Origin: Scyliorhinus canicula
Lineage: Eukaryota
Direction of reading: 5' to 3'
NCBI RefSeq assembly: GCF_902713615.1
Contig: NC_052153.1
Location: 20,723,323 to 20,787,322, forward strand
DNA length: 64,000 nt
The notes under the pieces are model-generated. The model searched no databases. It was not told the DNA's origin and was given only the letters and a program-made list of their open reading frames with translations. A program made the translations under genes and the position numbers. Shown here in pieces: positions 4,666-55,344 of this stretch (within the stretch, counting starts at the first letter, position 1; each line of letters begins with the position of its first letter).

Positions 4666-5526
4666 TTCATTGTGTATGAATCCTTTCAAGACCTTGTCCC
4701 TCCCTATCTCTGTATTCTCTGACAGCCACACACCCGCAACCCACTTAAGCCGAGTTCTCCTGCCTCTGGTCCTTTTGCATTTCCATTGTCTGCAATTTCC
4801 CAATGAGGGCCATACCTCCAGCTGCCTCAGCCCCTTGCTCCGGAATACTTGCCCAAAACCCCTCTGTCTCCATTAACAGCCTTCTTAAAACCTTTTTTCA
4901 CCTAGTCCTCATATCTCCTGCTTCGACTCGAGATCCATTTGAACCTGATTCAACCTCTGTAAGGTTCCTTGGGTCATTTTCCTATTGTCAGTAGGACCTG
5001 GTATGATTGTAAATCACTCTATTCCATCCCAGAGCCTTTCCGGATGCTGGATAATTGTTGATGTTCAGACTTTTTAAGGAACTTAAATGCGACCCCTCCC
5101 TCAATCAATCAAATTTTCTTTGAAGAAAATGAAAAAAAAGCGGAAACAATTAGAGTTGCAAATATTTTTAATATTTTTGCTATTACGAGCGCGATGACAG
5201 GAACTCGAGTCGTTTATATGGACCCGACTAGAATTATTTTTCTGTGGACTAGCGAATTAATTTAATGGATTTGTTTTCCCAGCACAGAGATACCCCCTGC
5301 CGTTCTACATTCTGGGAATTTGGGGAGAGCTGAGATCATCAAATTTTCCAAACATTGTGGATAAAAAGGAACCCTGCAGCAGCTCTGTGCTTTGCTTCCC
5401 AAAATGCACCGTGAGTAGATGAAAGTCATTGGTCGGTGGCTGAATTTATAAAATGTACCCTTTTGTCTGCTTTGAGTGATTCTGAATCAACAGCTATTGA
5501 ATGCTCCTGGGATACAGTGGGCATCA

Positions 5527-5855
5527 TTATTTGATTAAGCTGCAGGCTGTGGCGATTTCCCTTGTAGTGCAACTGCTATCACAGCATTGGTCAATAATTG
5601 GAATCTGCTTCTTGATCAATTTAGTTTGGGCGAGGGGCTTTGGGAAAACAAACTGCATTGTTTGGTCCCCCTCAACCTGAGGGCCAGCAACATGATAATC
5701 AGGTTCCATCTGCTCTTCCTGGGTGTAGTCATTGCCAAACGATTGCTGTCCATCATAAAACTCATAGTGCTGAAGCCTGTCATCGCCGAACACCCTCCGA
5801 ATTTGCTCTCTGTTCATCTTGAAGTAATCATCCCTGTTTGAGATCTCTGCGGGAT
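5527..5855 (-). CDS. Relaxin/insulin-like preprohormone, coding exon 2 (C peptide + A chain)
   Basis: Acceptor ttgtttctgttccag|ATCCC (AG at 5857-5856). The phase-1 join with exon 1 stays in frame (...PGY-N-PAEISNR...). Ends KK-QIPIIDQCCDSSCTTREIATACSLIK*, the insulin-superfamily A-chain motif CC-x3-C-x8-C after a dibasic site. Full product 165 aa. Confidence 0.93.
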
Positions 5856-6183
5856 CTGGAACAGAAACAAAGTTCCATCTGTGAACGCTCAATCAATGTA
5901 TCAGCATTTTAACTCCATGTTATCATCCCAAAATGGAACATTCACCTCAGAGAGAGTTTACCCATACTTACGTCGATTTAAGTGAACTTTTTTGCCGATT
6001 TAGTTTTTGCCTATTAACCATGCAAATTATTTTCTAATGTTGGTGTTTCTGTTTTTCTATCCTATAGGATGGGCTCAATGATCCCAGCTGGGAGCCTCAT
6101 GCCAGAGGAGTTTGGAGACATTTTGGGGCTGATTCACCAGCCACTGCTCCTGTTATTGTCTATTAAGGATTATTTAATAGGAA

Positions 6184-6385
6184 GGCAGCACGGTGGCACA
6201 GTGGTTAGCATTGCTGCCTCACGGAGTTGATGTCCCAGGTCCGATCCCAGCTCTGTGGAGCTTGTACATTCGCCTCGTGTCTGCGTGGCCTTCGCCCCCA
6301 CAACCCAAAGATGTGCAGGGTAGGTCGATTGGCCACGCAAAATTGTCCTTAATTGGAAGAAATGAATTGGGGACTCGAAATCTAT
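6184..6385 (+). mobile_element. HE1-type SINE (intronic)
   Basis: ggcagcacggtggcacagtggttagca head. Confidence 0.85.
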
Positions 6386-7414
6386 TTTTACAAAAGGATT
6401 ATTTAATAAGGAGGCAAATAGGGGGATTTAGTAATGGAAAAGGGCAGCAGGGAATGGGCATGAATGCAATATTTATGGGGAGAAATCTGCAGCAGGACCC
6501 GTGTGCAACCATCCTGTGCCAGGGAGCAGGAGGCGTGGGTTCTGTCAATGGGGAACATGGAGGGCTTGACTGAACGGCCACATGAAATAACCTTTTTACA
6601 AAGCAGAATCAAACACAGATTTACATCAATGAAATATTCATATGACATGCTGATTTATAATGCACAAACTTCGCTAATCATATACTTAACGTAACTGTGC
6701 TCCTTCATTCTTGTTTGATTTAGTTGGCACCTGATGACGCAAGAATTTTCAAATATTGAAATGGGGTCACACTGGGAAAGGGTTTGGGAAGCACCATGGT
6801 GCAAAACAAACTGGCTCTGCTCCTGATCTGCTATTGTGCCTTGGTGGAAAATCTTTCGTGAGGCTCCCACACATTTGGCAAAGGCATGGTGGTGCAGAGG
6901 GACAAATTCCCAGTTCTCATTGAGCTTTTCAGAACTATTATTATAGGTTTTGTTCTGACATGCTCTATAACTCAGTGATAATTTCAACTCACTTGACCTG
7001 CCAGGAACTGTGCAAGTAAACTTGCGCATTCCAGAAAGTGTGCTGAATTATAGGAAAATAACGTTTAAAGCCGGGTTTAATGTGTTCTCGGTGTGCCTCC
7101 AGAGCCATTTTGCGTTTCCAACTATTTGATTAGTGTTACTCACTCCGCTGGCTGGATTGCACCTCTTCTGTCGATCAGTCCAAGTCAAACTCAATCCTGA
7201 CCCATTACCTTGTGTTGTGAATTATTAACAATGCCAGGCAAGCTCCCAGTGAGACAGCTTGGGAAGGCCTTGCTGCAGATTCCTGGGGGGCTGCCACTGC
7301 AGGACTGTCGCTACAATACTAGAGGAGGTAGCAGAGACTGATCCCTTCAAAGGAAGCTGAGGAGAGGATGTCAGTACGAGACCCTCTTCCCAAATGTAGT
7401 CCTCAGTGACATTA

Positions 7415-7763
7415 CATAGAACATAGAACATAGAACAGTACAGCACAGAACAGGCCCTTCGGCCCTCGATGTTGTGCCGAGCAATGATCACCCCACTCAA
7501 ACACACGTATCCACCCTATACCCATAACCCAACAACCCCCCCCATAACCTTACTTTTTAGGACACTACGGGCAATTTAGCATGGCCAATCCACCTAACCC
7601 GCACATCTTTGGACTGTGGGAGGAAACCGGAGCACCCGGAGGAAACCCACGCACACACGGGGAGGATGTGCAGACTCCACACAGACAGTGACCCAGCCGG
7701 GAATCGAACCTGGGACCCTGGAGCTGTGAAGCATTTATGCTAACCACCATGCTACCGTGCTGC
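7415..7763 (-). mobile_element. HE1-type SINE, full length, young
   Basis: Head plus (TTCTATG)n tail; near-identical to 12288-12640. Confidence 0.9.
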
Positions 7764-8074
7764 CTGGCAGCATTGGGAAGGGGCAGTAACTGGAGAGAAT
7801 GTAAAGAACGTCTGATCATGTCCTCTCATGTGGGACATGCACAGATTCACTTTCAACAGGACAGAGGTCAGAGGTCAGAGACAGGCACCTTATGATTTAT
7901 TCCCCTCCCTTTTCCAAAATTGCTGAGTTCAACTCACTCAGCATTATCGGGGAACTAAACCTGGAATCTACTGTTCTCTGTAATTTACCTCCTTTGCTAC
8001 TGGGCCACATTATCTTTCTTTTAAGTTTAACATTTCACATCATTTAGACTCCAAGTGGGGGGGGGGTGGTCCAC

Positions 8075-8390
8075 AATAATAATAATAATCTTTATTACTG
8101 TCACAAGTAGGCTTACATTAACACTGCAATGAAGTTACTGTGAAAAGCCCTTAGTCGCCACACTCCGGCGCCTGTTCGGGTACACAGAGGGAGAATTAGG
8201 AATGTTCAATTCACCTAACAAGCACATCTTTCGGGAATTGCGGGAGGATACCGAAACACCTGGAGGGAACCCTCGCAGACACGGGGAGAATGTGCAAACT
8301 CCGCACAGATGGTGACCCAAGCGGGAACCGAACCTGGGACCCTGGCGCTGTGGCGCAACAGTGCTAACCACTGTGCCACCGTGCCACCCT
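8075..8390 (-). mobile_element. tRNA-derived SINE
   Basis: gggtggcacggtggcacagtggttagc head, (ATT)n tail. Confidence 0.8.
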
Positions 8391-8475
8391 AGCACGGACA
8401 GCCAGTGAATAATGCCACCAGCATGGGGTTTGATTCCCCCTTTGGCTGAAGTAGACTTGGGGCCCACCTCCCCAC

Positions 8476-8705
8476 NNNNNNNNNNNNNNNNNNNNNNNNN
8501 NNNNNNNNNNNNNNNNNNNNNNNNNNNNNNNNNNNNNNNNNNNNNNNNNNNNNNNNNNNNNNNNNNNNNNNNNNNNNNNNNNNNNNNNNNNNNNNNNNNN
8601 NNNNNNNNNNNNNNNNNNNNNNNNNNNNNNNNNNNNNNNNNNNNNNNNNNNNNNNNNNNNNNNNNNNNNNNNNNNNNNNNNNNNNNNNNNNNNNNNNNNN
8701 NNNNN
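8476..8705. other. Assembly gap (230 N) inside the intron of the relaxin-like gene
   Basis: Run of N. Confidence 0.99.
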
Positions 8706-9062
8706 GGACAATCATTAAACTAAAACTATAGTGTAAAGTAACAGAATTATGCAGCTCATTTCAGAATACAAGTAATTACAATAGATTACAAAATGTAGGT
8801 CTGCCTAATTTACAGAATAGAAATGAAAGGCTGTGGTTCCATGACTTTTAAATAATGGAGGATGCTACCTGAAGGTTCAACCCCTGCATGAATATGTGAA
8901 GACTGACATTCCTTCATGATAATGAAGCTGATAAGGTCATTGTATTCCTGATGCATTGATTTATAAAATCACATCATGTTTTAATTGGAATGACAACAAT
9001 GCATTTTCGGAATCACTGACTATTTCTCTACCTTGGTCAATAGAAGGGAGGTCAATACTCAC

Positions 9063-9231
9063 TATATCCGGGATGGAGGGCTCTCTGGCTAATGCCCCTG
9101 CAGATAGTTACCAGTATTTTGACAAAACTGTGACCACAGAGCTTTGTGAATACCAGACCAGGGTTTAATGTAGAATCTGCAAAGAGTGGCAGCGAGAGCC
9201 CAGTAATCAGGACGAACACCAGACACTTCAT
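9063..9231 (-). CDS. Relaxin/insulin-like preprohormone, coding exon 1 (signal peptide + B chain + start of C peptide)
   Basis: Manual translation from ATG at 9231: MKCLVFVLITGLSLPLFA-DSTLNPGLVFTKLCGHSFVKILVTICRGISQR-ALHPGY. Hydrophobic leader, B-chain motif LCG with C-x11-C spacing, ends at the canonical donor A|GTGAGT (9062-9057), phase 1 (169 nt). Confidence 0.93.
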
Positions 9232-9304: not shown

Positions 9305-9311
9305 TTTTATA
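9305..9311 (-). promoter_or_regulatory. TATA box of the relaxin-like gene
   Basis: TATAAAA on the minus strand about 75 nt upstream of the ATG, with an AGATAA (GATA-type) hexamer at 9287-9292. Confidence 0.7.
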
Positions 9312-24292: not shown

Positions 24293-25127
24293 GAAAACTT
24301 CCAGATCTGCTGACAGGATCTGTGCTGGAAAGGTTAAACCCTGCCACACTTCTCTAATATCCCTTTTGTAGCCTCTGTATCCTCATGGCGTTTCCCCTAT
24401 CTAACGCGTATTGTCGGCAAAATTGAAAACGTTGCCCCTCATCTAAATCATTGATATAGATTGTCCCTAACTGAGCCCCAAATGCCAATCCTTGCAATCA
24501 TCCACAAGCTTGTCAGCCTGAAAATGATCAATTTATTCCTACTCTCTGTTTCCTGGCCATTAACCAGTCCTCAATCCTTATCAGATATATTGCTCCCAGT
24601 CCCATCAATTTGTGTTTGGTGTCCTCACCTCTTGTGCAATCCCTTATCAAATGCTTTCTGAAAATCCAAACATACTACATCCACTGGTTTCCCTATTGCT
24701 GAACCTTTAAAAACCACTAACAGATCTGTCAAACAGGATTTCCTTTTCACAAATCCAATTTGACTGCTGAATTATACTACACATTTTCAGTGCCAAGTTC
24801 CAATGTCACATATAGTCAGACCTGGCATTTCCCTGCCCCTGATGTCAGATTAAGTGGTCTGCAGTTTCCTGTTTGGCCTGTCCCTCTTATAAAGAGCAGG
24901 GTCACATTTTCAAACTCACAATCATTGAGAAACAATAGAATCTAGAGAACCCTATCGAACTCTAAAATCCTCCCAATCCTAAGGAGTTCCATTCTTTTTG
25001 CCAGAATTTTTACAAGCATCTCCTTTAAATCTTGACTATAGGTCGACCTAGCGTATAATACAACCCCATTTTCCAGCCCCAAATATCATGCTTTTGGGTG
25101 GTGTATAAGTCTGCCATATTCTGTATG

Positions 25128-26458
25128 ATGTGTTGGGTAAAAGATACGATTTATAATCATCTAGATAGGAATAATATGATTAGGGATAGTCAGCATGGTT
25201 TTGTGAAGGGTAGGTCATGCCTCACAAACCTTATCGAGTTCTTTGAGAAGGTGACTGAACAGGTAGACGAGGGTAGAGCAGTTGATGTGGTGTATATGGA
25301 TTTCAGTAAAGCGTTTGATAAGGTTCCCCACGGTCGGCTATTGCAGAAAATACGGAGGCTGGGGATTGAGGGTGATTTAGAGATGTGGATCAGAAATTGG
25401 CTAGTTGAAAGAAGACAGAGAGTGGTAGTTGATGGGAAATATTCAGAATGGAGTTCAGTTACGAGTGGCGTACCACAAGGATCTGTTCTGGGGCCGTTGC
25501 TGTTTGTCATTTTTATAAATGACCTAGAGGAGGGCGCAGAAGGATGGGTGAGTAAATTTGCAGACGACACTAAAGTCGGTGGAGTTGTAGACAGTCCGGA
25601 AGGATGTTGCAAGTTACAGAGGGATATAGATAAGCTGCAGAGCTGGGATGAGAGGTGGCAAATGGAGTTTAATGTGGAGAAGTGTGAGGTGATTCACTTT
25701 GGAAAGAATAACAGGAATGCGGAATATTTGGCTAATGGTAAAATTCTTGGTAGTGTGGATGAGCAGAGGGATCTCGGTGTCCATGTACATAGATCCCTGA
25801 AAGTTGCCACCCAGGTTTATAGGGTTGTGAAGAAGGCCTATGGTGTGTTAGCCTTTATTGGTAGAGGGATTGAGTTCCGGAGCCATGAGGTCATGTTGCA
25901 GTTGTACAAAACTCTAGTACGGCCGCATTTGGAGTATTGCGTACAGTTCTGGTCGCCTCATTATAGGAAGGACGTGGAAGCTTTGGAACGGGTGCAGAGG
26001 AGATTTACCAGGATGTTGCCTGGTGTGGAGGGAAAATCGTATGAGGAAAGGCTGATGGACTTGAGGTTGTTTTCGTTAGAGAGAAGAAGGTTAAGAGGTG
26101 ACTTAATAGAGGCATACAAAATGATCAGAGGGTTAGATAAGGTGGACAGCGAGAGCCTTCTCCCACGGATGGAGGTGGCTAGCACGAGGGGACATAGCCT
26201 TAAATTGAGGGGTAATAGATAGGACAGAGGTCAGAGGTGGGTTTTTTACGCAAAGAGTGGTGAGGCCGTGGAATGCCCTACCTGCAACAGTAGTGAACTC
26301 GACAACATTGAGGGCATTTAAAAATTTATTGGATAAGCATATGGATGATAAGGGCATAGTGTAGGTTAGATGGCCTTTAGTTTTTTTTTCCATGTCGGTG
26401 CAACATCGAGGGCCGAAGGGCCTGTACTGCGCTGTATCGTTCTATGTTCTATGTTCTA
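25128..26458 (+). mobile_element. Young 5'-truncated CR1 LINE (reverse transcriptase)
   Basis: 374-aa ORF with QHGFVKGRSCLTNL, YMDFSKAFDKV, GVPQGSVLGP and KFADD. Frameshift near 26220; (TTCTATG)n tail. Confidence 0.97.
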
Positions 26459-32319: not shown

Positions 32320-33815
32320 CATCCCAAGTATTTTGGCAAATCCAAGTTGAGGAATCCAGCAGAAGGCTCTGCATCTTCAACATGTCTTTTAGCAGGTTCT
32401 GCTGCAACCGAATGCAATTTGGCATCATCTCAGCATCAGAGATTTTCCATTGAATCATGGAACAGATGATTGAGGGAATAGAAGGGGTTCGTGTCTACGT
32501 TGACAATATCATAATCTGGGCCACAACCCCAGAGGAACATGTGTCACGACTCAAGAAAGTATCCGACGCATACATGAACATGGCCTCAAGCTAAATAGGT
32601 CCAAGTGCTGTTTTGGGACATCCACGCTGAAGTTCCTGGGCGATCAGATTTTGCGACATGTTGTGCGCCTGGACACAGACAAAATTAAAGTCATCGAGGC
32701 AATGAAAGTCCCCGAGGACAAGAAGGCAGTACTGCGCTTCCTGGGAATGGTCAATTTCCTTGGCAAGTTCATCCTGAATTTGGCCACGCACACCACGGCC
32801 CTACACAACCTGGTAAAAAAATCAACCGCCTTTGAGTGGAACATGGAGCACCGAACAATGTGGCTGGAGCTGAAAGCCAAGCTCACCACTGGACCCGTCC
32901 TTACATTATTTGACGCAGACCGAGAGTCCAAGATATCCACAGATGTGAGTCAGGATGGCATTGGGGCGGTGTTGCTTCAAAGAGACGACACGTCATCCTG
33001 GGTACCGGTAGCATACGCGTCACGGGCAATGACACCCATTGAGACCAGATATGCGCAGATTGTGAAGGAGTGTATAGGTCTTCTCACCGGCATCCTCAAA
33101 TTTCATGATTATGTCTACGGCTTGCCAACATTTTCTTTTGCGACGGATCATAATCCTCTGGTCCACGTCATCCAAAAGGACCTGAACAACATGACTTGTT
33201 TGCAGAGAATTCTGCTCAAACTCCAGAGGTATGATTTCAATTTGGTGTACACACCTAGCAAGGAACTCATCATCGCCAATGCATTGTCCCGGCTCCGTCA
33301 CCTCACCCAGTGAACCACTGGAGATCATCCAGCACAGGTACAACTGTGTGCAAGCACTCTCCCGACAACAGATGAGAAGATCGTTCTCATCTGAGAAGAG
33401 GCGGCCAAAGACCCCCTGTTGCAGCGAGTCATCCACAACCTCAGCAATGGCTGGCAGAAAGGGCAATGCCCTCAATTCTATAACGTCAAGGACAACCTGA
33501 CGCTAATCGATGGCATCCTGCTCAAGCTGGACAGGATAGTCATCCCGCTACGTCTCCAGAGCATGGTACTGCGGCAGATTCATGAGGGACTCCTGGGCGT
33601 AGAAAAGTGCAGATGCAGGGCCCGGCAACAACCAGGACATCACGGACATTGTCCTGAACTGCGAAACCTGTCAGAGGTTCTAACCAACGCAGATCACGGA
33701 GACGCTCCAACCACATGACCTAGAGACCTCTCTGTGGTCCAAGGTTGGCATTGACCTATTCCACGCGAATGGTCGCGACTATATCTTAATCATCGATTAC
33801 TTTTCTAACTATCCT
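32320..33815 (+). mobile_element. Gypsy pol fragment (RT, RNase H, integrase)
   Basis: LRFLGMVNFLGKFI, TDVSQDGIGAVLLQ, VAYASRAM, TDHNPL and IDLFH..LIIDYFS. Confidence 0.92.
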
Positions 33816-51913: not shown

Positions 51914-52086
51914 TCAGGAATTTAAGCTGCAGGTTTGTATAGAAGACAGCAAGCAACAGGTTTCACAACAGTTTTAAAGGTATGTTGAAGTTTTCTTCCA
52001 AATTTCTTGCAATAAAATATATTTTTTCACTTCAACGATCAATAAAGTATACTTTTTTACTTGGATACAATGGTTCCGTTGTCTTT
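51914..52086 (-). pseudogene. Relaxin-like paralog, exon 2 pseudogene (A chain)
   Basis: Pyrimidine tract plus acceptor ttgtttacag|AA, phase 1, in frame to ...QEIWKK-TSTYL*NCCETCCLLSSIQTCSLNS*. KK-x7-CC spacing is as in the intact gene and CCTGCAGCTTAA is shared. Premature TAA at 51974-51976 and one codon missing between the last two cysteines. Confidence 0.75.
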
Positions 52087-52937
52087 CTGTAAACAAGGAG
52101 GGGAGGTGATGGAAGGGAGGGAGGGGAGGGAGAGGAAGGAGGCAAGGGGAAGGAGGGGAGGGAGAAGAGGGAGGAGGGGAGGCTCTTCTGGGGAGTTCTC
52201 AACACATAGGGACATGCATTTAACTCAGCCTCTGCTCCACGCACCCCCCCCCCCCCCCCCGACTAAATGCCTTAATTCCATCTTCATACAGGCCAAAGGC
52301 AGTGGCCAGGTGATCACAAACTGCCCTTGCATCACTCGGAGCTTCCTCACCTGCCCCAGGAGGTATGCCTGCATCAGGTTCCATATTGCCCTCCTCCAGC
52401 TACTCCACTTCATGTGGCAAGACATCTTGTGGGTGAATGCTCAGTCCATTCTGAAGGGCAAAGTTGTGTAATGCACAACACACAGCAACAATCTTTGCAC
52501 CTATCCCTGGGCATGCAGTAAAATACCCCTGACCTGTACAAGCATCAAAAAGGTGATTTCAAAATACCAATTATCCTCTCCACTACCTGGCGTGTTGCCT
52601 TCCTGTTGATCAATGAAACAGTGTCATTTCTAGGCACCCTCAATACAATATATGTTCAATCGACAGCCCGATTACTTTTGGGAACCAAGCGATTTGGTAG
52701 AATACGATTGACCTTTCCTTCACCTTCACAGGGGATGTGTCAAATATAATAAGCTCCGAAGCCCTATGATGAATTGCATGAATTACCTGGTGAATGCTGG
52801 TCCTCGCAGTATTCTGTCAAATGTTACACATGTCACTAATGCTATGTTGAAAGGAACCAAAAAAGATTCAGCGCTGTCCTGAGTTTTGTTTCCACTGTTA
52901 AGGCAGTTAGAGATCACCTTCGGGCCTTCCTTCAATT

Positions 52938-53124
52938 GGGGTCAATTCTCCGTCGGAAGGAATCTCCATTCTGCCGGCAGCGCAACCCGCCCATGGGTTT
53001 CCCGGCGGCATGGGGTGGCCACAATGGGAAATCCCATGGGCCGGTTGCGGGAATGGAGAATCCTGCTGCCGGCGGTGACGCGCTGCCGGGGAACACGCGG
53101 CTGGGGAGGCGGAGACTTCACCCC
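52938..53124. mobile_element. Palindromic MITE
   Basis: Termini ggggtcaattctccg / cggagacttcacccc; similar element at 54670-54842. Confidence 0.7.
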
Positions 53125-53210
53125 AACATTTCACAAAGGCGTTGCTTCCTCGCTGAAGCGCAGTCTCCTGGCACACATCTCCTCTGACATCATTTCATAT
53201 GATAGCCTGT

Positions 53211-54253
53211 GTCTGTACACTGAGGGATCTGTACACTCTGAGGGGTCTGTACACTCTGAGGGACATGTACACTCTGAGGGACATGTACACTCTGAGGGGT
53301 CTGTACACTCTGAGGAGTCTGTACACTCTGAGGGGTCTGTACACTCTGAGGGACATGTACACTCTGAGGGACATGTACACTCTGAGGGGTCTGTACACTC
53401 TGAGGAGTCTGTACACTCTGAGGGGTCTGTACACTCTGAGGAGTCTGTACACTCTGAGGGGCCTGTACACTCTGAGGGACATGTACACTCTGAGGGGTCT
53501 GTACACTCTGAGGGGTCTGTACACTCTGAGGAGTCTGTACACTCTGAGGTGTCTGTACACTCTGAGGGGCCTGTACACTCTGAGTGGTCTGTACACTCTG
53601 AGGAGTCTGTACACTCAGAGGGGCATGTACACTGTGAGGGGCATGTACACTGTGAGGGGCCTGTACACTCTGAGGGGGTCTGTACACTCTGAGGGGTCTG
53701 TACACTCTGAGGGGTCTGTACACTCTGAGGGACATGTACACTCTGAGGGACATGTACACTCTGAGGGGTCTGTACACTCTGAGGGGTCTGTATACTCTGA
53801 AGGGCCTGTACACTCTGAAGGGTCTGTACACTCGGAGGGGTCTGTACACTCTGAGGGGTCTGTACACTCTGAGGGGTCTGTACACTCTGAGGGGTCTGTA
53901 CACTCTGAGGGGTCTGTACACTCTGAGGGGTCTGTACACTCCGAGGGGTCTGTACACTCCGAGGGGTCTGTACACTCTGAGGGGCATGTACACTCTGAAG
54001 GGTCTGTACACTCTAAGTGGTCTGTATACTCTGAAGGGCCTGTACACTCTGAGTGGTCTGTACACTCGGAGGGGTCTGTACACTCGGAGGGGTCTGTACA
54101 CTCTGAGGGGCCTGTACACTGTGAGGGATCTGTGCACTCTGAGGGATCTGTACACTCTGAGGGATCTGTACACTCTGAGGGATCTGTACACTCTGAGGGA
54201 TCTGTACACTCTGAGGGGTCTGTATACTCTGAGGGACCTGTACACTCTGAGGG
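53211..54253. repeat. 18-bp minisatellite (TCTGTACACTCTGAGGGG)n, about 58 copies
   Basis: Directly visible tandem array with variant units (GGGACATGTAC, GGAGTCTGTAC, GGGCCTGTAC) and a 1-nt insertion near 53675. Confidence 0.97.
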
Positions 54254-54436
54254 ATGAGTAACTAATTCGCCCCCTCTCCCGGCAACATGTTGCCGAGCTC
54301 TTCTCTCATGAACCCTATGCTGATGTCAAAGCCTCAGTGATTTTAAGACACCAGGTGAAATAATGGGAGAGGAATAGGTAAACCTAAAAGTGAAAGCAAG
54401 AGACGAAATAGCGGAGATTCAGAACTGTGAAGCGAA

Positions 54437-54607
54437 TTGAAGTACTTGGTGTTCATTCTGGTAATCAGACAGTTCCTGCTCTTTACAGATTCTGCTGAAG
54501 TTGACCCTGGTGAGATATTCTTAAAGCTCTGATTTCATAAACCTGCGATACAAATATTGCGTATCTGCAGGGTCAGCGGTTGGAGATCACTCCAGCTGCA
54601 GCATATA
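54437..54607 (+). pseudogene. Relaxin-like paralog, exon 1 pseudogene (copy 2)
   Basis: Translates LKYLVFILVIRQFLLFTDSAEVDPGEIFLKL*FHKPAIQILRICRVSGWRSLQLQHI then GTGAGT. The start codon is TTG, the first B-chain Cys is TGA (54530-54532), the donor is phase 0, and the TATA box is degraded. The 5'UTR (54355-54436) and intron (54608-54652, 54855-55140) align to the reverse complement of 9232-9312, 9018-9062 and 8710-8995. Confidence 0.9.
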
Positions 54608-55344
54608 GTGAGTGTTGACCTACCTTCTATTGACCAAGACAGAGAGATAGTCGTTGGTGCCGTGCAAGTTGGGCGGTATCCTCCGTTTCACCGGCAGCGC
54701 ACTCACGCCCACGGATTTACCGACGGCGTGGGGGTACCCACAATGGAAAACCCATTGGCCGGCTGCCGGGAAGGAGGATCCCACTGTTGGCGGGAGCGTG
54801 CCGTGCCAGAAAATGGGTGTGGCGGGACCGAGAATCCCACCCGTCACGTTTACATGTCATTCCTGTTAAAACGTGATGCAATTTTATATATCAATACATC
54901 AGGAATATAATGACCTTATCAGCTTAATTATCACGTAGGAATGTTTTCATATATTCATGCAGGGGTTGAACCATCAGGCAGCATCCTCCATTATTTGAGA
55001 GTCACAGAACCATGGCCTTTGATTTCTAGGTTAATTAGGTAGATCTACATTTTGCAATCTATTGTAATTATTTGTATTCTGAAATGAGTTGCATTGTGCA
55101 ATCATCCTGTTACTTTCTACTTCTGTTTTAATTTAATGATCATCCAGAGTTATGTCATGAATAATGATTACTTGTTTTATACATGTCATCAAGCCATGAT
55201 GATTTTTCAGTAAACCAGTCATCTATCGGTCCATCCATCCATCTCTCTGTCTATCCCGTGACTTCACTATGGGGCAGGGTGGGGGTGCTACCTCAGGCAA
55301 AGGGGAATCATTGGCATTATTCTAAGCCACACACTAGTCGTCTG

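Follow-up and report, generated by a model that had tools for sequence, protein, structure and literature searches.

A predicted relaxin-like peptide gene of Scyliorhinus canicula with a non-canonical receptor-binding face, and its tandemly arrayed elasmobranch relatives

Introduction

The evolution of the relaxin family is usually told with four ancestral genes: RLN, RLN3, INSL3 and INSL5. In the stretch of Scyliorhinus canicula DNA analysed here (64,000 nucleotides, referred to as a whole as the window), the minus strand encodes a helix of the relaxin B-chain type in which the positions of the receptor-binding cassette are occupied by His, Lys and Val. The initial annotation took this cassette to be replaced, saw it paired with an insulin-like start of the A chain, and proposed an altered or new receptor specificity, an antagonist role or a non-endocrine secreted role. 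The question raised by this locus is whether these features make up a new kind of ligand, whether they are shared with other genes of a known kind, or whether they are early signs of the decay of the gene.

Results

Gene structure and predicted precursor

Between 9138 and 9100 the minus strand encodes C-G-H-S-F-V-K-I-L-V-T-I-C, from TGT at 9138-9136 to TGC at 9102-9100, and R-G follows; this reading agrees with the one given initially. The helix is part of a 165-amino-acid insulin/relaxin-type prepropeptide encoded by a two-exon gene on the minus strand, in which all six cysteines are present at the canonical spacing of the superfamily (C-G-x10-C and C-C-x3-C-x8-C) behind a hydrophobic N-terminus. 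The order of the precursor is signal peptide, B chain, long acidic C-peptide, K-K and a 26-residue A chain.

Introns of phase 1 are typical of insulin and relaxin genes. In the window gene a phase-1 intron (5856-9062, minus strand), which contains an N run (8476-8705) and interspersed repeats, splits the coding exons inside the C-peptide. The exons join in frame; the donor reads A^GTGAGT after 9063 (from 9062) and the acceptor ttccag^AT before 5855, the caret marking the exon boundary. A two-exon structure is typical of insulin and relaxin genes (PMC2805637).

The coding part of exon 1 (9063-9231, minus strand, ATG at 9231) comprises Met1-Tyr56 and the first base of codon 57, and runs through the signal peptide and the B chain into the C-peptide. 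A TATAAAA box was read in the sequence at 9305-9311 (minus strand), about 75 bases 5' of the start codon. The predicted signal peptide (residues 1-18, MKCLVFVL..., 9178-9231, minus strand) has the hydrophobic N-terminus that is kept across the family, the bamboo-shark protein starting with MKCLVFIL where the catshark window gene has MKCLVFVL, and would be cleaved after Ala18 or Ser20. From the alignment with the relatives (see below) the B chain is predicted to extend from Asp19 to Arg50 (9082-9177, minus strand); its mature end is probably Gln49, as would result from monobasic cleavage at R-x4-R and trimming of the Arg. The B-chain helix runs from Cys32 to Cys44 (9100-9138, minus strand), with His34, Lys38 and Val41 at the three positions of the relaxin cassette. 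The second B-chain cysteine, Cys44, is followed by Arg45 and not by Gly, the chain ends C-R-G-I-S-Q-R, and there is no Trp anywhere in the exon-1 peptide, which bears out the initial observations of an Arg in place of the Gly and of a missing terminal Trp.

The coding part of exon 2 (5527-5855, minus strand) continues the C-peptide and goes on through the KK site and the A chain to the stop codon TAA (5529-5527), with a TGA directly after it. The dibasic site between C-peptide and A chain is Lys138-Lys139 (5608-5613, minus strand). It precedes a predicted A chain of 26 residues (5530-5607, minus strand), which starts with Gln140, has the cysteine pattern CC-x3-C-x8-C and carries the tail S-L-I-K. 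The translation thus runs from L-I-K-K into Q-I-P-I-I-D-Q-C-C and ends with C-S-L-I-K, matching the earlier description of a Gln after KK, of IIDQCC and of a four-residue extension. Polyadenylation-like signals of the ATTAAA type, both of them motif matches only, are found at 5261-5266 (minus strand, about 260 bases 3' of the stop codon) and near 5172.

Representation in sequencing runs

Shares of sampled sequence words were taken from a run index, in which the kinds of run ('RNA?', '?' and 'DNA?') are the index's guesses. Nine small runs from three studies contained 0.70-1.00 of the sampled words of 5400-5855 (exon 2 and 3'UTR). The same nine runs contained 0.19-0.26 of 5400-7600, a stretch of which the exonic part makes up 0.207, and large 'DNA?' runs contained 0.38-0.69 of it. 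These values suggest that the nine runs behave like transcript assemblies and that the gene is apparently transcribed. In nine or more further small runs of this species next to none of the stretch of exon 2 with 3'UTR and intron was present, which hints at tissue-restricted expression. For two small runs of another organism, X6 and X7, the share of exon 2 and 3'UTR was about 9%, a value suggestive of a fairly close orthologue in a species related to this one.

An elasmobranch family of relaxin-like genes

A HMMER search with exon 2 against 1.84 billion representative proteins returned five true relatives (E 4e-7 to 1e-3), all from elasmobranchs and all with automatic names ('prorelaxin-like' or 'uncharacterized'). 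Three are from the cloudy catshark Scyliorhinus torazame (XP_072373717.1, XP_072373718.1 and GCB70559.1), one is from the bamboo shark (GCC25587.1), and the fifth is a cluster to which the 'prorelaxin-like' XP_055486529.1 of the little skate Leucoraja erinacea belongs. Further searches for protein homologues with exon 1, exon 2 and the family alignment yielded nothing beyond the known family members. With a six-member family profile from which the window gene had been left out, the spliced protein scored 132.5 bits (E 2e-40, residues 1-162), and the best of 200 shuffled sequences scored 6.1 bits; the family likeness is therefore not due to chance.

Pfam was scanned on the separate exons. Exon 2 matched the Insulin family PF00049 over residues 65-104 of the exon with 19.8 bits, as against a gathering cut-off of 23 bits, and exon 1 alone gave no PF00049 match; two relatives, P0009 (27.5 bits) and P0006 (XP_072373718.1, 32.5 bits), were above this cut-off. 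In the B region the best match of the family profile was the human relaxin-2 B chain (19 bits), followed by relaxin-3, INSL3 and INSL5. The nearest ESM Atlas clusters of the skate protein were prorelaxin 1, prorelaxin H1, relaxin-3a and INSL5. In all seven aligned family sequences the A chain extends two to four residues beyond its last Cys.

Structure prediction was applied to the skate relative, for which an AlphaFold2 model showed the B-chain helix and the two A-chain helices at pLDDT 64-75, the rest being disordered (mean 48.5). A wide fold search of the PDB with this low-confidence model was uninformative (best Z 3.5), and in a Swiss-Prot fold search INSL6, INSL3, relaxin-3 and prorelaxin H1 came first, none of them significant. 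Complex prediction with the predicted B and A chains gave a score of 0.21 against a mark of 0.34, which is evidence neither way on their pairing. A tree of the seven family sequences does not resolve and gives no orthology call to the skate gene. Scans of the repeat-rich 64-kb window for syntenic genes (regular expressions, and Pfam on the ten longest ORFs) found no kinase motifs, as JAK2 or JAK3 (the neighbour of INSL3) would show, and no other host gene; at the loci of the relatives the flanks covered were 10 kb. A full-text literature search with the sequences of the peptide and of shark and skate relaxins gave no match, and neither a publication that deals with such genes in catshark, bamboo shark or skate nor a functional study of skate XP_055486529.1 was found.

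Taken together, these sequence comparisons point, with a probability that we put at roughly 0.7, to an intact gene for a secreted two-chain peptide, which would be a member of an existing, unstudied elasmobranch family in the relaxin branch. The family is fast-evolving and tandemly arrayed, and is known so far from elasmobranchs only.

The B-helix face across the family

The cassette was compared in an alignment of seven sequences, those of the window gene and six relatives. Where the window gene has H/K/V, the residues are R/T/V in skate XP_055486529, R/A/L in catshark GCB70559, K/D/I in bamboo shark GCC25587, P/Y/I in catshark XP_072373717 and V/K/S in the third B-like segment of catshark XP_072373718; the canonical R/R/V is found in a skate paralogue that lies upstream of the annotated gene and has not been called. 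The relaxin cassette is thus absent from five of the six relatives, RxxxRxxV occurring in the uncalled skate paralogue only, and in the sequences compared a non-canonical cassette is the family norm.

The hydrophobic core of the helix is kept: a Leu before the first Cys, Phe, Tyr or Leu at +4, Val, Leu, Ile or Met at +5, and hydrophobic residues at +8 and +11 (with one Thr at +11). The window gene has retained the fold-bearing residues Leu (before the Cys), Gly, Phe, Val, Leu and Ile. Among the seven family members the exposed face of the B helix is variable and the core conserved.

Several of the deviating residues recur in the relatives. The Arg after the second B-chain Cys is found in the skate protein (C-R-G-I) and in a dead copy of the gene (C-R-V; see below), and catshark GCB70559 has Lys at this position. 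The first-position His is shared by the window gene and its dead copy (CAC against CAT) and is therefore probably older than the duplication that separated them. What is particular to the window gene is the Lys at the second cassette position and a Gln (CAG) in place of Trp, the Trp being kept at this site in the skate protein and in the dead copy (TGG in the latter).

The processing sites were compared in the same alignment. The C-peptide/A-chain site is K-R or R-R in four of the six relatives (KR, KRR, KR and KR); of the exceptions, one catshark protein has A-K only, and the upstream skate paralogue has R-R or K-R nearby. A basic residue is found 1-4 positions after the Trp in relatives (W-K, W-R, W-G-T-R) and in the dead copy (W-R), and the window gene has Q-R. 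The Arg or Lys just after the Cys would form, with this later basic residue, an R-x4-(R/K) convertase motif, and this motif may be the reason for the replacement of the Gly after the second Cys. In front of the A-chain CC the family consensus is S-D-R (S-D-R-C-C).

Tandem copies and a dead neighbour

The skate locus (L001) has two uncalled paralogues, one on each side of the called gene. The upstream one (L001:745-928 and L001:3929-4239, plus strand) lies 9 kb from the annotated gene, encodes a 164-amino-acid precursor and has the B-helix sequence C-G-R-F-Y-L-R-K-A-V. Its donor and acceptor contexts and its intron phase match those of the window gene, the donor context in the skate paralogues being GGATAT(A/G)^GTGAGT. 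The other is represented by a third skate exon 2 of the family (L001:20983-21291, minus strand), whose A chain ends at the last Cys (...C-C-V-E-H-C-N-F-E-K-L-L-S-E-M-C); the exon 1 belonging to it was not found within the fetched flank.

The window also contains a paralogous exon 1 (copy 2; 54437-54592, plus strand) which is dead: its start Met has become Leu, a stop codon stands at the first Cys, and two bases are inserted in front of the donor. Copy 2 has nevertheless kept the first-position His and a C-R-V-S-G-W-R ending. A candidate degenerate A-chain remnant lies at 51929-51970 on the minus strand (CC-x2-C-x8-C with an extra Cys, a stop before it and the end C-S-L-N-S); this match is weak (tblastn E 0.19). 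The skate cluster and the copies in the window, one of them dead, indicate that the family exists in tandem arrays that gain and lose copies.

Some further observations were made alongside. In catshark P0006, three successive B-chain-like C-x11-C segments precede one C-peptide and A chain; either this is an unusual precursor with several B chains, or exons of tandem copies have been fused in the gene model. The model next to it, XP_072373717.1, extends over 82 kb. A short distance upstream of the dead exon, 52886-54257 contains long, repetitive ORFs on both strands (268-352 amino acids) with Pfam matches to Bactofilin, FapA and MinC_C (bacterial beta-solenoid), which are probably tandem-repeat artefacts. 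Retroelement remnants are present at 25098-26219 (plus strand, RVT_1, E 3e-27) and at 32651-33310 (plus strand, RNase H, E 2e-26).

In the alignment of copy 1 (the window gene) with copy 2, identity is 51% in the helix, 65-77% in the other parts of exon 1 and in the promoter, and 83-87% in the intron (stretches compared: 9003-9062 with 54613-54672, and 8740-8996 with 54853-55140). No segment of this alignment diverges more than the B helix. Its low identity fits either a helix that has diversified or a mosaic history, and also relaxed constraint. If the latter were the case, the window gene would be intact by luck and bound for the fate of its neighbour, and its cassette and lost Trp would reflect decay rather than adaptation. 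The death of copy 2, the remnants in the cluster, a helix that is less conserved between the copies than the intron, and the absence of the terminal Trp found in the skate protein and copy 2 would all fit such a history. Against it, the gene retains all six cysteines, the core of the B helix, its two splice sites and two processing sites, the start codon and the TATA box, the match to the family profile covers the full length of the protein, and RNA-like runs from three studies contain the exon but little of the intron. We therefore consider decay unlikely, and prefer to regard the window gene as an intact member of the family.

Discussion

Predicted processing and receptor expectations

In the scheme that we envisage, the signal peptide would be removed from the precursor, three disulfides would form to give the insulin fold, a prohormone convertase would cut after Arg50 (R-x4-R) and after Lys138-Lys139, and a carboxypeptidase would trim the basic residues. 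The N-terminal Gln of the A chain may cyclise; the pyroglutamate proposed in the initial annotation is compatible with a Gln that follows a dibasic site. The His/Lys/Val face would then bind a leucine-rich-repeat receptor of the RXFP1/2 type in the manner of INSL3, or else the peptide would be an orphan like INSL6.

Since this face is off the signatures of relaxin, relaxin-3 and insulin, an altered receptor profile is a fair expectation. A His34-x3-Lys38-x2-Val41 face combined with Gln for Trp would be expected to give no RXFP3/4-type activation and weak or no canonical RXFP1 activity. By analogy with mammalian structure-activity work, from which all these expectations are derived, activation of the RXFP3/4 type appears unlikely and binding to RXFP1 in the canonical manner doubtful; the most likely role would be at an LGR-type relaxin receptor, or that of an orphan. 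Our confidence in any specific receptor is much lower than that in the gene and its family.

A more far-reaching reading is that the genes form a birth-and-death array specific to the elasmobranch lineage, in which the fold has been kept and the B-helix face diversified, and that this member has acquired a new or changed receptor or serves as a decoy or antagonist. We hold this to be a tentative possibility, and on balance a doubtful one. If it were true, the array would show, in a vertebrate, the diversification of a ligand face within the insulin superfamily.

Sharks and skates possess additional relaxin-like genes which are arranged in tandem, very divergent, and either automatically annotated or uncalled, and the receptor-binding face differs from copy to copy in this array. 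If expression of the peptides is confirmed, they would provide natural variants for the study of receptor choice among the RXFPs, and may represent signals of cartilaginous fishes, reproductive or paracrine, that have so far gone unrecognised.

Comparison with known ligands

The A-chain start described initially as insulin-like raises the possibility that the peptide is an insulin- or IGF-like ligand of the insulin or IGF-1 receptor tyrosine kinases. I-I-D-Q-C-C does resemble I-V-E-Q-C-C and I-V-D-E-C-C, and among the PDB matches of the A chain, all of them weak, DILP2, IGF-1 and insulin (E 0.06-0.3) were slightly ahead of relaxin A chains (E 0.3-0.5). This likeness is shallow. The gap in score is about 2 bits, the family consensus has S-D-R before the CC, and the family profile and the Atlas clusters point to prorelaxin, relaxin-3 and INSL5. 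Moreover, determinants of insulin-receptor binding are missing from the window gene: it lacks the aromatic triplet (B24-B26), has Ala for Tyr A19 before the last A-chain Cys, and has Q-I-P before the Ile-Ile pair where insulin has Gly A1. A ligand of this class would, on these grounds, be highly improbable, and membership in the relaxin branch remains the preferred reading.

INSL6 is an orphan testis peptide of the relaxin cluster, found in mammals, and has residues after the last A-chain Cys. Its entries from four mammals were among the top six Swiss-Prot fold matches of the skate-relative model (E 0.18 and weaker, TM 0.2-0.3), and it shares a long C-peptide with the window gene; the likeness, obtained by fold search of the skate relative, is non-significant.

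Human relaxin-2, the ligand of RXFP1 (PDB 6rlx, 2mv1), and the predicted peptide are both of the two-chain type with a long C-peptide. The window gene differs in having His and Lys for the two Arg, no Trp after the second Cys, and a C-terminal tail on the A chain. Substitution of Lys for the arginines in human relaxin strongly lowers activity. R-x3-R-x2-I/V is the accepted RXFP1 signature (PMC2805637), and with His34, Lys38 and Val41 the window gene does not carry it. In the structure of RXFP4 with INSL5 the C-terminal Arg-Trp of the B chain, which with its free carboxylate is required for activation, fills the receptor pocket, and the extra chain-end residues of insulin and the IGFs clash with this receptor (PMC9886975); the window gene has the B-chain end C-R-G-I-S-Q-R and the A-chain tail S-L-I-K. 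The absence of both the relaxin cassette and the C-terminal Arg-Trp, on which the proposal of a changed specificity had been built, was thus borne out.

The closest solved structure to the exon-1 peptide is the B chain of human INSL3 (PDB search; E 0.009, 11/18 residues identical). The INSL3 helix (PDB 2h8b, 2k6u) and that of the window gene can be written together as L-C-G-H-x-F-V-(R/K)-x-L-V-x-(V/I)-C, with His, a basic residue and Val in common. INSL3, too, has residues after the last A-chain Cys, and it was among the top Swiss-Prot fold matches of the skate relative, without significance. These similarities could be taken to mean that the window gene is the shark INSL3 orthologue and that its H-x3-(R/K)-x2-V face signals via RXFP2. 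In INSL3, which has the cassette H-x3-R-x2-V and acts on RXFP2, the receptor-contact residues include Arg B16, Arg B20 and Trp B27 (PMC11122137). The window gene has the His and the Val but has Lys for Arg B16 and Thr for Arg B20, has Arg for the Gly after the Cys, and lacks Trp B27. Moreover, the INSL3 histidines occur only in mammals among the species examined, and in Insl3 of the elephant shark the residues are Arg, Arg and Ile, the Trp being replaced by Leu (PMC11122137). Because His B12 is reported as mammal-specific, the INSL3 likeness of the window gene is read as convergent. The arrangement of the family in tandem arrays, the greater closeness of the family profile to relaxin-2, and a seven-sequence tree that does not resolve likewise speak against orthology, which we regard as very unlikely. 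Judged from the sequences, the likeness is real as chemistry but most likely convergent, and no sign of orthology. As for the claim that the cassette had been replaced, it stands in so far as His/Lys/Val is non-canonical, but it was overstated: the exact cassette positions are occupied, the face is similar to that of INSL3, and a related motif is, in part, already known from a ligand with an established receptor, namely human INSL3 with RXFP2.

Skate XP_055486529.1 is 34% identical to the window gene overall; read from the seven-sequence alignment, 12/19 residues are identical in T-K-L-C-G...C-R-G-I and 13/26 in the A chain. Both genes have two exons, and the donor and acceptor contexts match in the neighbouring skate paralogue. 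The skate protein shares with the window gene the Arg that follows the second Cys of the B chain, and its A chain likewise has 26 residues, starts with Gln (after K-R) and carries a four-residue tail with a final Lys. It differs from the window gene in its Arg/Thr/Val cassette, in a Lys that lies one position later, and in the Trp five residues after the Cys. Three of the odd features are therefore not specific to the catshark gene: by this alignment, the Arg after the second Cys, the Gln start of the A chain and the Lys-ending four-residue tail are old traits of the family and not innovations of this gene. As far as can be judged from such comparisons, the window gene encodes a known kind of hormone most of whose oddities are inherited, its own traits being the His (shared with the dead copy), the Lys and the change of Trp to Gln.
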